IMG/VR virus record: IMGVR_UViG_3300028558_000016
Coordinates: 372,001-436,000 of that record
Length of the DNA: 64,000 bases
Strand: one strand, 5' to 3'
Shown here: piece by piece, positions 9,211 to 61,381 of the stretch
How positions within the stretch are numbered: position 1 is the stretch's first letter
Layout of the letters: each line of letters starts with the position of its first letter
Notes under the pieces: generated by a model
The model's input: only the letters and a program-made list of their open reading frames with translations
The model's database searches: none
What the model was told of the DNA's origin: nothing
Translations under genes and position numbers: made by a program

Positions 9211-9708
9211 ATGGGGAAGATAAAGAAGTTCAAGGAATTCAACGAGAAGGAATCTGAGTATACCGTTTATTCAAATAAGAAAGGTGGAAAATTCTGGGGT
9301 GACCAGGGTGCTGGTGTTCTTCCCATTTGCAGAAAAACAGGAAGAATTCTTGTTGCCATGAGAGGTGAACAGGTAAATGAGCCTCACACGTGGGGAATTT
9401 TTGGAGGAGCGATGGACGAAGGAGAAACTCCAGAAGAATCTGCAAAAAGAGAATTAGTTGAAGAATCAGGATATACTGGAAAATTTGAAATCATTCCAGC
9501 TTTCATATATGTGTCTCTGGATCAAAAGTTCACATACAATAATTTCATAGGGATAGTCGACGAGGAATTCCAACCGGAATATGATTGGGAAACTGAATAT
9601 GCTAAATGGATGACTCTCGATGAATTGCTTAGTGCAAAGCCAAAACATTTCGGCTTAAAGAAGCTCTTGGACAAGAGCATGGATATAATCAAGAAATTTG
9701 CAAAGTAG
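9211..9708 (+). CDS. Nudix hydrolase
   Basis: GGAMDEGETPEESAKRELVEESG Nudix box; ends TAG-TAA. Confidence 0.9.
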   Translation: MGKIKKFKEFNEKESEYTVYSNKKGGKFWGDQGAGVLPICRKTGRILVAMRGEQVNEPHTWGIFGGAMDEGETPEESAKRELVEESGYTGKFEIIPAFIYVSLDQKFTYNNFIGIVDEEFQPEYDWETEYAKWMTLDELLSAKPKHFGLKKLLDKSMDIIKKFAK

Positions 9709-9719
9709 TAAAAACTATG

Positions 9720-10227
9720 AGCCGCCAGAACTTAAGATCGGTGATGAAAGTTTTTGTGGCGTTTCATAGACTTAGGTCATAGACTTGCGAAGAATCCCCT
9801 AAGGGCGTTAGTCTTGCAGAGGATTTCGACTTCCGCTAAGAAGTCCTCAGTCGTGCCAGTGTCAGTATACACTTAAAGCGTTCCATCAATCTCAAGCCTG
9901 ACGGCTCTCATTTTGATTCTTTTTCTTGGTTTGTGTTTGTTGTCGACACAGGTAGACAAACCTCGCTAAAAACCTACACTAATGGGTTCGTGCAGAACCA
10001 CGGAATTTTAATTTATGGCTCATAATGGTAAAAGCCTGATGCTGATCTTCCGCCAACAACTATCTGGTTTTTCTAACTCCAGAAAAATATCAGGTTTAAA
10101 GTCCCTGAGGGTGACTACAGGTTTTTATGCGCAAAGACCTTGTGTGAAAACAACGTCCGTATATCGGTCTACGGCAGACAGGCCACTCTATATGATCCTG
10201 AAGATCAGTCGGTGACGCGACATGGCT
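9720..10227 (-). ncRNA. candidate large structured ncRNA (about 510 nt)
   Basis: GC-richer gap with no credible ORF; long-range CTGATCTTC/GAAGATCAG pair; many hairpins; promoter-like TACTTTAG upstream on the minus strand. Confidence 0.5.
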
Positions 10228-10318
10228 AAAGTAATAATTTTTCTAATTCTGCTATAAAATAAATAAAAAATATTTTTAGTATATTTGAACTATTACCCAT
10301 ATCACTGATATAACTATC

Positions 10319-10726
10319 ATGAAGTTCAGAAGAAGAAGAAAATGGGTCATATTTAAGAAATGGCTTGCGAGCAAGTTTGATCCTGGTGAAACACTATTAA
10401 GTACGGAACAAGAAAAGGCATATAAAATAGCAAAGAAGTTAATCGTTGATGCTGATAGTGTTTTATATGCAGACGTGTCCGGTGAAGCAAGGTACATCAT
10501 CGTCAATGGAGAAAGATTTGTCAGGATGACAAGTGGCAAGATACGAATAATTGACGGCCCATACAAATATGACGTGACGTTTGATCCAAGAAGATTGGAT
10601 GAATTGAGACGCTTGTTTGCAAAAAATCTCGAACACAGGCACGATAGGTTAGAAGCTGAAATAGGAATGAGAGTGGAAAAAAGTTTGGATCATATTTTAA
10701 AAGAAATAGAAAATGATAACAATTGA
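10319..10726 (+). CDS. hypothetical protein
   Basis: ORF track; TATATTTG promoter upstream. Confidence 0.65.
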   Translation: MKFRRRRKWVIFKKWLASKFDPGETLLSTEQEKAYKIAKKLIVDADSVLYADVSGEARYIIVNGERFVRMTSGKIRIIDGPYKYDVTFDPRRLDELRRLFAKNLEHRHDRLEAEIGMRVEKSLDHILKEIENDNN

Positions 10727-59670: not shown

Positions 59671-60167
59671 TGTCCTATGACGTCATATTAAAGGAAGTAG
59701 GTCGTGCTAAATTAGGAGTGGTTAAGACGATCATGGATCTAACTGGTCTTGGATTAAAAGACTCAAAGGACTTGGCAGATGATGTGGACCCTCGTGTTGG
59801 AAAAGGAAGAGTGATAAGAAGAACAGATTCGCTCGAAGAAGCAGAGTCAGTAAAAATACCGCTTGAAAATGCTGGAGCAACAGTTGAAATCATGAATAAT
59901 ACTACATTGGAAACAATACAATCAACATTAACGAGTTTCAAAGTTGTCACCAGCGGTTCAATATTGCAATACACATCTTCCACGCCAAGTTTAACTGGAA
60001 TATTTGAACCTATCGCTGGTACTGGGATTGGCGGGAAATCATTTCGCATTAATTACAGATCTAAAGATGGCGAAGATAAAACAGAAACAATAGAAGCTCC
60101 TACTTTAGAAATTGCTAAAACAAAGATACTTGATTTAGATTATGTTAACTACCACATGGGAGGTTGA
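59670..60167 (+). CDS. ribosomal protein L7/L12 C-terminal-domain protein with extra domain
   Basis: YDVILKEVGRAKLGVVK...TGLGLKDSKDL...EEAE..K..LENAGATVEI. Confidence 0.85.
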   Translation: MSYDVILKEVGRAKLGVVKTIMDLTGLGLKDSKDLADDVDPRVGKGRVIRRTDSLEEAESVKIPLENAGATVEIMNNTTLETIQSTLTSFKVVTSGSILQYTSSTPSLTGIFEPIAGTGIGGKSFRINYRSKDGEDKTETIEAPTLEIAKTKILDLDYVNYHMGG

Positions 60168-60198
60168 AACAAGTTAACATCTGTGCCATAAAATTGAT

Positions 60199-60909
60199 AT
60201 GGCATTATTACCACATTACAGACCTGTTATGGTCTCCTCCGAACTTGTAAAAGTTCAACCGATGTCTCCTCCCGATGGAACGGCCCTGTTAGCATATATG
60301 GATGTTAAATACGAATCAAAAATGGAAAAGAAAAGCAGAAGGAAAAGCACGATGAGACGTTTTAAAATAAAATATACAAATACAAAAGGTGTTGTAAAAA
60401 CTCGTAACATCAAAGCCACAAGCGAAGAGAGGGCAATGTCTGAAATTAAAGACATGGGTCAACATCATTATACTATCGTGGAATCTCTTGATGAGCCTGA
60501 TCCTGTCAATCCATGCAAAGAAGTAAAACTTGATTTATCCAAGTTCACACGTCCCGGAATTTATTCAAGAGAAAATGATCAAAATCTTGGACGGTTGGAA
60601 AGATTAGAAAAATGGTCAACCGTTATCACTGGTTTAGCTGGTTCTGGGAAAAGTAATCTTAGTGCTGAAAAAATAGGATGGCTTAGCGAATATGCAGCAA
60701 ACCATGCACAATGGGAATCATCTTCAAATTCCATTTACACTCCATATTTAGATACTTGGGATGACAGTAGCCATGCTGCGATGAAAATAGCTGACAATTC
60801 ATCGTATGGAATTTTTACTGAGTTACCTATTGCGAGACGAGTATTTTCATCACTTACGCCGCAATCGGCAATTGATGTCTCTCCTTTGAACGCGGAGAAA
60901 AAGAACTAA
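60199..60909 (+). CDS. mosaic protein with major-capsid-protein-like segments
   Basis: ELVKVQPMSPPDG; LEKWS; LPIARRVF...IDVSPL. Confidence 0.45.
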   Translation: MALLPHYRPVMVSSELVKVQPMSPPDGTALLAYMDVKYESKMEKKSRRKSTMRRFKIKYTNTKGVVKTRNIKATSEERAMSEIKDMGQHHYTIVESLDEPDPVNPCKEVKLDLSKFTRPGIYSRENDQNLGRLERLEKWSTVITGLAGSGKSNLSAEKIGWLSEYAANHAQWESSSNSIYTPYLDTWDDSSHAAMKIADNSSYGIFTELPIARRVFSSLTPQSAIDVSPLNAEKKN

Positions 60910-61381
60910 CGATCCTGAATTCAATGTTTGGATTTTGTTCTTCCATTTTAGTTAATCTACTTTCAAAATTTTCATCTTTTGGATTTCTTACGATCTCTAT
61001 CGATGATATAAATCTTTTTATTCCTTTGATTTCTTTCTTAGTAATTCTTTCTTCTCTTTCATCTCCATATAATTCTCTTCTCTCCTTATAATCCATGTGT
61101 TCTGGATCATAAAACATTGGATCTTTTTCTGGGTCATAAAGGAATGGTTCAAAATGGAATTTATCACTCATGGCATCTCCGTCAAAAGTTATTCTACAAT
61201 TTCTTCTATGGAATTTGAATAATGGATTTCGTGTGAATGAAATATAATCGAACATGGCAGATGATTCCATTCTATCTTCCTCGAGTATTCCCTCAAGCGA
61301 ATCAAACAAAGTAAAATGGTAAATTGAACCTACTTGTTTTTTCTCACATACAAATGACTCGAATGTTCTCAAATGCCTCAT
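60854..61381 (-). CDS. ART-fold-like protein with capsid-targeting-like N-terminus
   Basis: MRHLRTFESF; IYHFT...ISFTR...EREERI. Confidence 0.5.
   Translation of the reverse strand: MRHLRTFESFVCEKKQVGSIYHFTLFDSLEGILEEDRMESSAMFDYISFTRNPLFKFHRRNCRITFDGDAMSDKFHFEPFLYDPEKDPMFYDPEHMDYKERRELYGDEREERITKKEIKGIKRFISSIEIVRNPKDENFESRLTKMEEQNPNIEFRIVSSFSPRSKERHQLPIAA

Follow-up and report, generated by a model that had tools for sequence, protein, structure and literature searches.

A short modular leader on some 80 otherwise unrelated proteins of an uncultured T4-type phage: a candidate capsid-targeting signal

Introduction

Why should proteins with little else in common begin with the same dozen residues, and in several cases do so just behind the same AT-rich heptamer? 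The question is raised by a 64,000-nucleotide stretch of DNA (the window), bases 372,001–436,000 of the 482,156-bp IMG/VR virus record IMGVR_UViG_3300028558_000016, a record that is complete according to CheckV. In the window a Nudix hydrolase, a protein with an ADP-ribosyltransferase (ART) fold and several other proteins open with variants of one leader, here called the tag, most of them behind the motif ATATATA. An earlier note on this DNA had likened the tag to the capsid-targeting sequence (CTS) that T4's internal proteins (IPs) carry and had proposed that its carriers are late-expressed, head-packaged effectors injected at infection. The genome is that of an uncultured T4-type phage, in which phmmer finds homologues of T4 gp4, gp17 (terminase), gp18 (sheath), gp19 (tube) and gp20 (portal) as well as replication proteins. 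It is argued below that the tag is a modular leader peptide and that it probably works in the manner of the T4 CTS.

The tag is a modular leader peptide

A strict regular expression run on open reading frame (ORF) starts across the genome gave 30 matches, which were used as the seeds of a profile hidden Markov model (HMM), with 12,670 reversed N-termini as the control. Genome-wide, 79 ORF starts reach at least 10 bits against one control (the best control score being 11.1 bits), and at the looser cut of at least 8 bits the counts are 89 and three. The genome-wide look at N-termini that the earlier note had proposed thus yields far more members than the six to eight seen there. The carriers, some 80 in number, represent about 11% of the genome's genes, and their consensus is MKHIKLFE(N/G/E)F(L/I)NE, 12–13 residues long, with a class that is one residue shorter (for example MKNLKKFGELNE).

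Beyond the tag the carriers appear unrelated, as had been supposed. When the first 18 residues are removed the bodies of the 79 give no BLASTP pair at E<=1e-3 (the best is E=0.007), and the Pfam domains that can be recognised differ, being Nudix, RNase H-like, ATP-grasp, alpha/beta hydrolase and Pol-beta-type nucleotidyltransferase. Most tagged proteins have no match in Pfam and PHROG scans, and many are very small, at 60–130 residues. About 30 of the tagged genes occupy the stretch between the sheath and tube genes and the part that follows them, and several lie beside the capsid gene. The modularity is seen directly in the homologues of the Nudix protein encoded at window 9211–9708, since many of these carry variants of the tag, one starting MKTYKEFINE, and others have unrelated N-termini.

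The codons used in the tag vary: Ile is ATT 22, ATA 21 and ATC 7 times, Leu is written with five codons, Glu is GAA 32 and GAG 27 times, and the Phe and Lys codons vary just as freely. Conservative replacements (I/V/L, F/Y, K/R) are common at every position. There is some bias, in that His is CAC 36 times against CAT 7 and the Leu codon CTA is over-used, a moderate excess of CAC and CTA for which we have no explanation. Given the synonymous variation and the conservative replacements, the conserved object is therefore the peptide and not an RNA or DNA element, and the tag is a real, modular leader peptide under peptide-level selection.

The head protease and sites of the cleavage type

The major capsid protein belongs to the T4 gp23 family (PF07068, E=6.5e-44) and is encoded at genome 66728–68251 on the minus strand. 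Just upstream of the capsid gene, and outside the window, is a 700-residue ORF (genome 68283–70385, minus strand; locus L155) with a prohead protease of the T4 gp21 type (Peptidase_S77, PF03420, above the curated cut-off), whose motifs LGELDHP and ISSRAxG line up with T4 gp21's His and Ser motifs. Here the S77 domain is fused to 13 tandem repeats of 14 residues, I.YSEYLAEN(V/L)DK., with LAE in each, and this S77-plus-repeats architecture is common to IMG/VR relatives (L167, L168). By analogy with T4, in which gp21 does as much with gp22, the LAE repeats would fit a scaffold that is dismantled by a protease specific for hydrophobic-x-Glu. An ATATATA also lies in frame at codons 233–235 of this ORF, between the protease part and the repeats, and from it the scaffold might be transcribed on its own.

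In the capsid protein the conserved FDI..V.PM block is preceded, at a distance of about 49 residues, by HSLNE↓SSS; for T4 gp23 the distance from this block back to the known maturation site, LTE↓A, is 43 residues. In six relatives the corresponding column is always L-x-E (LNE, LYE, LYE, LNE, LNE, LNE), and HSLNE↓S is the predicted maturation site of the capsid protein. Among the tags 40 of 79 end in hydrophobic-x-Glu exactly at residue 12 or 13, mostly as LNE, and a site of this type is found within residues 9–24 in 51 of the 79; the narrower [LIVF]NE occurs within residues 9–20 in 36 of 79 tagged proteins against 14 of 647 other ORFs. With LNE at the end of the tag and in the capsid propeptide, and LAE in the scaffold repeats, one type of site is thus common to all three. 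The tag HMM gives no significant match to the scaffold repeats, and so no claim is made that the tag copies a scaffold repeat. A complex prediction of the protease plus scaffold (residues 20–500) with a 96-residue tagged protein scored 0.00, which speaks neither for nor against binding.

Two promoter-like motifs

The count of ATATATA in the window, 15 against 10.5 in shuffles, is not above expectation. Placement is another matter: intergenic DNA, roughly 10% of the genome, contains 83% of the 94 genomic sites, and the heptamer is among the 7-mers most enriched upstream of genes. Its distance to the ATG falls into two classes, one of 4–5 nucleotides (nt) and one of about 19–29 nt. The longer spacing is seen with the genes for the tail sheath (24 nt), the tail tube (29), a baseplate wedge protein (22) and two tail-fibre proteins (27 and 21), and those ATATATA-driven genes that have a recognisable function are all virion genes. 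The spacing is exactly 4 nt at 17 sites genome-wide, which include window 9200, 13283 and 44042 on the plus strand and 61392 on the minus strand, and 12 of the 21 sites at 4–5 nt precede tagged genes. The fixed 4-nt spacing suggests leaderless late mRNAs, because aligning RATATATA to the T4 late promoter, TATAAATA, and following the geometry of that promoter would put the transcription start about 5 nt downstream, on the ATG itself.

A strict composite of the Bacteroidota −33 and −7 elements was tried as a pattern for host-type promoters, gave only four intergenic sites and was replaced by a motif found de novo, TTAGTATATTTG. This second intergenic motif, in full TTAGTATATTTG(T/C)A, has about 25 sites lying 17–35 nt before ATGs and contains the Bacteroidota −7 consensus TAnnTTTG; its sites in the window are 10277–10288, 27385–27396 and 54638–54649, all on the plus strand. 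It is the nearest upstream motif of a DNA-polymerase gene and of the clamp loader, and among tagged genes just two (genome 163459 and 163980) follow it. The first same-strand motif upstream is ATATATA for 45 of the 47 tagged genes that can be assigned and the host-type motif for the other two, whereas for untagged genes the numbers are 236 and 172, an odds ratio of 16 with a Fisher p=4e-8 that overstates the independence of the observations, since tagged genes are clustered. As judged from these sequences, ATATATA is a candidate late promoter class and TTAGTATATTTG a candidate early, host-type one. Copies of ATATATA also occur at window 14073 and 19657–20062, just upstream of tRNA clusters.

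Members and non-members in the window

Five window members are strong, with 19–26 bits against the best control score of 11.1, and their translations read as the earlier note had described; all five are among the 30 seeds of the HMM, and so their own scores are slightly circular. The tagged Nudix hydrolase (9211–9708, plus strand, 165 residues) has the tag MGKIKKFKEFNE at 9211–9246, scoring 19.3 bits, followed by the Nudix domain at residues 33–153 (Pfam NUDIX, E=8.4e-17), and an ATATATA at 9200–9206 stands 4 nt before its ATG at 9211. At 12249–12614 (plus) a protein of 121 residues with no Pfam or PHROG match carries MAKIKDFKDYLNE (26.2 bits), and its ATATATA, at 12220–12226, is of the long-spacing class, 22 nt before the ATG at 12249. 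A long variant of the tag, MKNFDEFSNSIRINE (20.4 bits), opens the 238-residue protein of 13294–14010 (plus), with ATATATA at 13283–13289, 4 nt before the ATG at 13294; a similar long variant opens an ORF at genome 467294 on the minus strand. The protein of 44053–44589 (plus, 178 residues, a weak PHROG match only) has MKHLQTYQQLNE (25.7 bits) and an ATATATA at 44042–44048, again 4 nt before the ATG, here at 44053. The fifth, of 98 residues (44817–45113, plus; MKNLKKFGELNE, 24.5 bits), lies within a run of genes on the same strand and has no ATATATA directly upstream.

The ART-fold protein (60854–61381, minus strand, 175 residues) starts at 61381, with an ATATATA at 61386–61392 on the same strand, 4 nt before the ATG. 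Its tag, MRHLRTFESFVCE, scores just 9.2 bits, and the protein is counted as a member despite this because each of its 16 homologues has a canonical tag (MKHIKTFESFLFE is an example) and Glu13 is invariant among them. In an AlphaFold2 model (predicted local distance difference test score, pLDDT, 75) the fold starts near residue 18 and tag residues 1–13 are unstructured (pLDDT <50). The best PDB matches of the model are Tpt1/KptA and DarT and then Scabin (E=2.8e-4, template-modelling score ~0.5), and so the ART likeness noticed from the letters extends to the modelled structure; the protein has an ART fold as modelled, a statement about the fold only.

Two further proteins had been put forward as looser members. 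The one at 12615–13283 (plus, 222 residues, TTG start), which begins MKHISPYYPFDE, scores 5.1 bits, the level of noise, and yet retains MKHI, an aromatic residue at position 7 and F-D-E at positions 10–12; it is a doubtful case and at best a degenerate member. Its Pfam matches to ATLF (anthrax-lethal-factor-type, E=7e-5) and Peptidase_Mx1 (E=3e-3), both below the cut-offs, give a weak hint of a metallopeptidase-like protein. The other, an ART-PolyVal-like protein of 179 residues (53639–54178, minus; N-terminus MGYIQRFKERFPDK), is dropped, since it has no HMM score and its homologues conserve this N-terminus as part of their own domain, without a hydrophobic-x-Glu site. A borderline case to add is the 209-residue protein of 55411–56040 (plus), which begins MKNIKPFSKVSLNVE, scores 9.9 bits over residues 1–8 only and has no Pfam or PHROG match. 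The earlier positions suit the genes as such, but the two minus-strand N-termini lie at 61381 and 54178 and not at 60854 and 53639. That RATATATA lies just upstream of most members stands, in the form ATATATA, for 9211, 13294, 44053 and 61381 (minus) at 4 nt and for 12249 at 22 nt, and fails for 44817, 12615 and 54178 (minus).

The heptamer is found before other genes as well. A copy at 8798–8804 on the minus strand lies 7 nt before the untagged 381-residue ORF of 7645–8790 (minus; no PHROG match), and the motif is therefore not specific to tagged genes. Another, at 54502–54508 (minus), lies 6 nt before the ATG of the ORF at 54178–54495 (minus), which directly precedes 53639–54178. At 9200–9207 the palindrome ATATATAT serves both strands, for the tagged Nudix gene on the plus strand and, through an overlapping minus-strand ATATATA at 9201–9207, 5 nt away, for the divergent ORF of 8797–9195. 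The 381-residue ORF is adjoined by the largest ORF of the window, of 1,307 residues (3720–7643, minus).

The genome has one tagged and one untagged Nudix enzyme, the untagged gene lying at window 63065–63586 (plus) and being the best match to T4 NudE (E=3.4e-5). In metagenomes there are GNAT-acetyltransferase/Nudix fusions (P0003, P0004, P0010, P0012, P0013) in which the tag is internal, at the domain junction, for example as ...PFNE-MKHIRTFESFKMNE-QDSE...; such fusions may be polyproteins open to cleavage, or may result from the merging of two gene calls.

Distribution beyond this genome

Other sequences were searched with a degenerate DNA pattern for MKHIKL(F/Y)E.F that leaves the residues after F unconstrained. 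It matches in more than 117 IMG/VR contig stretches and, across 596 Gb of prokaryote genomes, in only six, all of them contigs of metagenome-assembled genomes and three in Bacteroidota bins. In about two thirds of the viral matches listed the three residues after the pattern are [IVL]-x-E (VNE 31, INE 25, ISE 11, LNE 7 and others), and an ATATATA lies at most 45 nt upstream in 30 of the 135 distinct matches listed, with peaks at 4 nt and at 17–26 nt. Distant viral contigs preserve the tag while spelling it with different codons. In LR756500.1, the closest relative, a variant of its own, MKYIKEYEEF-I-x-E, is present in nine copies. The tag string does not occur in the full-text papers searched.

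An S77 protease, in an ORF of 640–690 residues, is encoded by four of five large tag-bearing contigs, both complete ones among them. In two of them a small tagged gene lies between portal and protease, which is the position of gp67/gp68 in T4. In two smaller T4-type IMG/VR contigs a tagged gene of about 115 residues stands immediately before the protease (L165, 1326–1679, MKTIKTFEQFIN...; L166, 1113–1448, MKIIKTFEDFITE...), the place of the prohead core genes 67 and 68 in T4.

Comparison with known packaged and processed phage proteins

In T4 the internal proteins Ip1–3 have only an N-terminal leader in common, which directs packaging and is cut once by gp21; this CTS is MKTYQEFIAE, and any protein fused to it gets packaged (PMC8442874; PMC3012670). 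Ip1–3 act against GmrSD restriction enzymes (PMC12373910), the packaged ADP-ribosyltransferase Alt is processed in the same way as the IPs (PMC5694885), and the propeptide of gp23 has 65 residues (PMC5694885). The leaders in the T4 record itself are MKTYQEFIAE and MKTFKEF... The tag resembles the CTS in being an N-terminal leader of 10–20 residues that is the sole feature common to otherwise unrelated proteins, in its MK start, a position 4 that is hydrophobic or aromatic, Phe (here Phe or Tyr) in position 7 and, in about half of the tags, hydrophobic-x-Glu at the end, and in belonging to a phage that also encodes a protease of the gp21 type and a capsid protein of the gp23 type. It differs in having some 80 carriers, against three in T4 and about ten across the T-even phages; in its putative cargo, which is mostly acidic and includes enzymes where the T4 IPs are basic; and in its host lineage, the phages here being relatives of Lak and other huge phages, with Bacteroidota-type signals. 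When 1,009 T4 ORF starts were scored with the tag HMM there was no match on the T4 IP N-termini. The likeness drawn by the earlier note thus holds for the pattern, the T4-type capsid protein, the S77 protease and the matching site motifs, and does not extend to the T4 leaders themselves, and so the claim here is that the tag works like a CTS as judged by pattern and not that the two are homologous.

With T4 Alt, which is both packaged and injected, the comparison is with the ART-fold protein of 60854–61381, which likewise has a leader and here lies behind a putative late-type promoter; it differs in its size of 175 residues, in its DarT/Tpt1-like fold and in having no sequence similarity to Alt. 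Phages phiKZ and SPN3US offer another parallel, as giant phages with a T4-related prohead protease and many head proteins cut at x-Glu; their gp21-related proteases cut head and ejection proteins at (S/A/G)-x-Glu, and the propeptides are thought to direct incorporation (PMC5694885). Their propeptides are mostly longer than 100 residues and have no single short motif, whereas here one consensus of 12–13 residues is found on about 80 genes.

The promoter-like motif may be set beside the T4 late promoter in a similar way. Both are a single AT-rich −10-like element without a −35 partner before virion genes, and one position separates (R)ATATATA from (N)ATAAATA. The differences are the 17 sites at exactly 4 nt from an ATG and the result of the search for a gp55 homologue, given below.

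Proposed mechanism and alternative explanations

On this evidence the tag is probably a late-expressed, protease-cleaved, prohead-targeting leader of the T4 CTS kind; the targeting, the cleavage and the late timing we infer. Tagged genes would be transcribed late, from ATATATA-type promoters or inside late operons, and the short, amphipathic leader would bring the cargo into the core of the assembling prohead. There the gp21-type (S77) protease would cut after the Glu of hydrophobic-x-Glu at residue 12 or 13, and the same type of site would mature the major capsid protein and dismantle the scaffold repeats. The mature cargo would remain in the head and could enter the host with the DNA, which is the least certain step and one that we hold to be possible though somewhat short of probable. 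Such cargo would include the Nudix hydrolase, the ART-fold protein, an RNase H-like protein, an ATP-grasp enzyme, a Pol-beta-type nucleotidyltransferase, an alpha/beta hydrolase and many small proteins of unknown role.

Several points weigh against this account, beginning with the fact that packaging, cleavage and timing are read here from sequence. No hydrophobic-x-Glu occurs after residue 8 in 28 of the 79 tagged proteins, which have just an internal L-F-E (residues 6–8). The mature tagged proteins are mostly acidic (median isoelectric point 5.5), unlike the basic T4 IPs, and the T4 leaders go unmatched by the tag profile. Internal [LIV]NE occurs 0.83 times per 1,000 residues in tagged proteins against 1.07, a slight depletion that is not informative. 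A phmmer search with T4 gp55 found no late sigma factor of that type at E<=1, although a divergent factor would escape it; the degenerate tag pattern has no match in Lak-C1 or in the cultured relative PTm1; and the clustering of tagged genes tempers the promoter association, as already said. To our knowledge about 80 cargo species, or 11% of the genes, would also greatly exceed every case on record.

The main rival is a leader whose function has nothing to do with the head, whether as a docking helix for another factor of phage or host, a localisation or stability signal, or a pro-peptide that holds enzymes inactive until a different protease removes it. Nudix, RNase H-like, Pol-beta nucleotidyltransferase and ATP-grasp proteins are typical cytoplasmic enzymes of metabolism and repair, many tagged genes lie among tail rather than head genes, and the third of tags without a terminal hydrophobic-x-Glu, the acidity of the cargo and the unmatched T4 IP leaders would all sit comfortably with such a role. 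Set against it are the match of the terminal tripeptide to the predicted cleavage sites of capsid protein and scaffold, the co-occurrence of tag and S77 protease in other contigs, the small tagged genes at the gp67/gp68 position in relatives and the link of tagged genes to the promoter class of structural genes, and we regard a role away from the head as unlikely, if deserving of attention. It could also be that the leader does target the prohead and is cut there, and that the tagged proteins are core or scaffold components for assembly only, to be degraded or expelled and not delivered as effectors. Many are indeed very small (60–130 residues) and acidic, like the T4 core peptides, several are encoded in the head-gene block beside the capsid protein, and the scaffold itself consists of cleavable repeats; but folded enzymes (Nudix, ART fold, ATP-grasp, nucleotidyltransferase) would hardly be expected as scaffold and the bodies are not enriched in internal sites of the cleavage type, which leaves a purely structural role rather improbable.

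Conservation at the level of nucleic acid, as a translation-initiation region, a site bound by a translational regulator or a recombination cassette by which genes are shuffled to sit after one common promoter and start, might account for the codon deviations (CAC 36 against CAT 7, and the over-use of CTA), and the 12 tagged genes that lie 4–5 nt after ATATATA suggest leaderless mRNAs, in which the 5' coding sequence could matter. Since every position shows frequent synonymous and conservative substitutions, a promoter motif is absent next to most tagged genes, and the tag persists in distant viral contigs despite different codons, we consider this explanation very unlikely. As for chance, or the expansion of a single paralogous family, the clustering of the genes in small-ORF arrays is what is often seen in expanded families, yet with 79 matches against one control, no similarity between the bodies of any pair and differing Pfam domains it is hardly credible. 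A leader of the T4 CTS kind is then the explanation that we prefer.

Relatives, host signals and genetic code

The capsid protein nearest to that of this phage among GenBank phages is that of LR756500.1, an uncultured phage of 462 kb, at 45.6% identity, and with the Prevotella Lak megaphages the identity is about 41%; remoter matches are to other uncultured phages of 630–735 kb and to the Tenacibaculum phage PTm1. A megablast of window 9000–14100 against GenBank phages found no near-identical phage. The genome has a GC content of about 36%, a Shine-Dalgarno-like tetramer is present in only 49 of 720 ORFs (7%), and the sequencing runs that contain the region are rhizosphere metagenome DNA runs only, with no RNA run among them. 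The scarcity of Shine-Dalgarno-like tetramers, the motif with the Bacteroidota −7 consensus and the restriction to rhizosphere runs together make a Bacteroidota host likely.

There are 25 tRNA genes in the window, in several clusters across 1929–53061, with duplicates for Asn (3), Gln (3), Pro (2), Phe (2), Val (3), His (2) and Arg (4). One tRNA at 2278–2351 (plus) has a CTA anticodon, of the amber-suppressor type, and is labelled Pyl by ARAGORN. Genome-wide recoding of the stop codon TAG was considered for it and set aside for want of any sign: TAG closes 38 of 720 ORFs and read-through extensions are rare, and code 11 is therefore taken to apply throughout. Three TAG-ended ORFs have an in-frame extension of at least 60 codons (genome 21945–22196, minus; 292506–293270, plus; 306009–306830, plus), and read-through limited to a few genes is possible.

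Significance

In huge phages the genes without a known role run into the hundreds. Should the leader mark capsid cargo, about 11% of the genes of this phage would be placed in the head, dated to late infection and credited with a likely purpose at entry, for example against host defences, and a simple sequence rule for injected proteins would be at hand in thousands of uncultured phages. More widely, it is quite possible, though somewhat short of probable, that one portable leader of 12–13 residues serves Lak-related huge phages of Bacteroidota, together with many T4-type phages of smaller size from the environment, to load dozens of different enzymes and small proteins into the capsid for delivery with their DNA. 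In this genome that would amount to an ‘injectome’ of about 80 species. Were this so, the packaged and injected proteome of uncultured phages would be readable from sequence, and the tag might be used as a general packaging handle.

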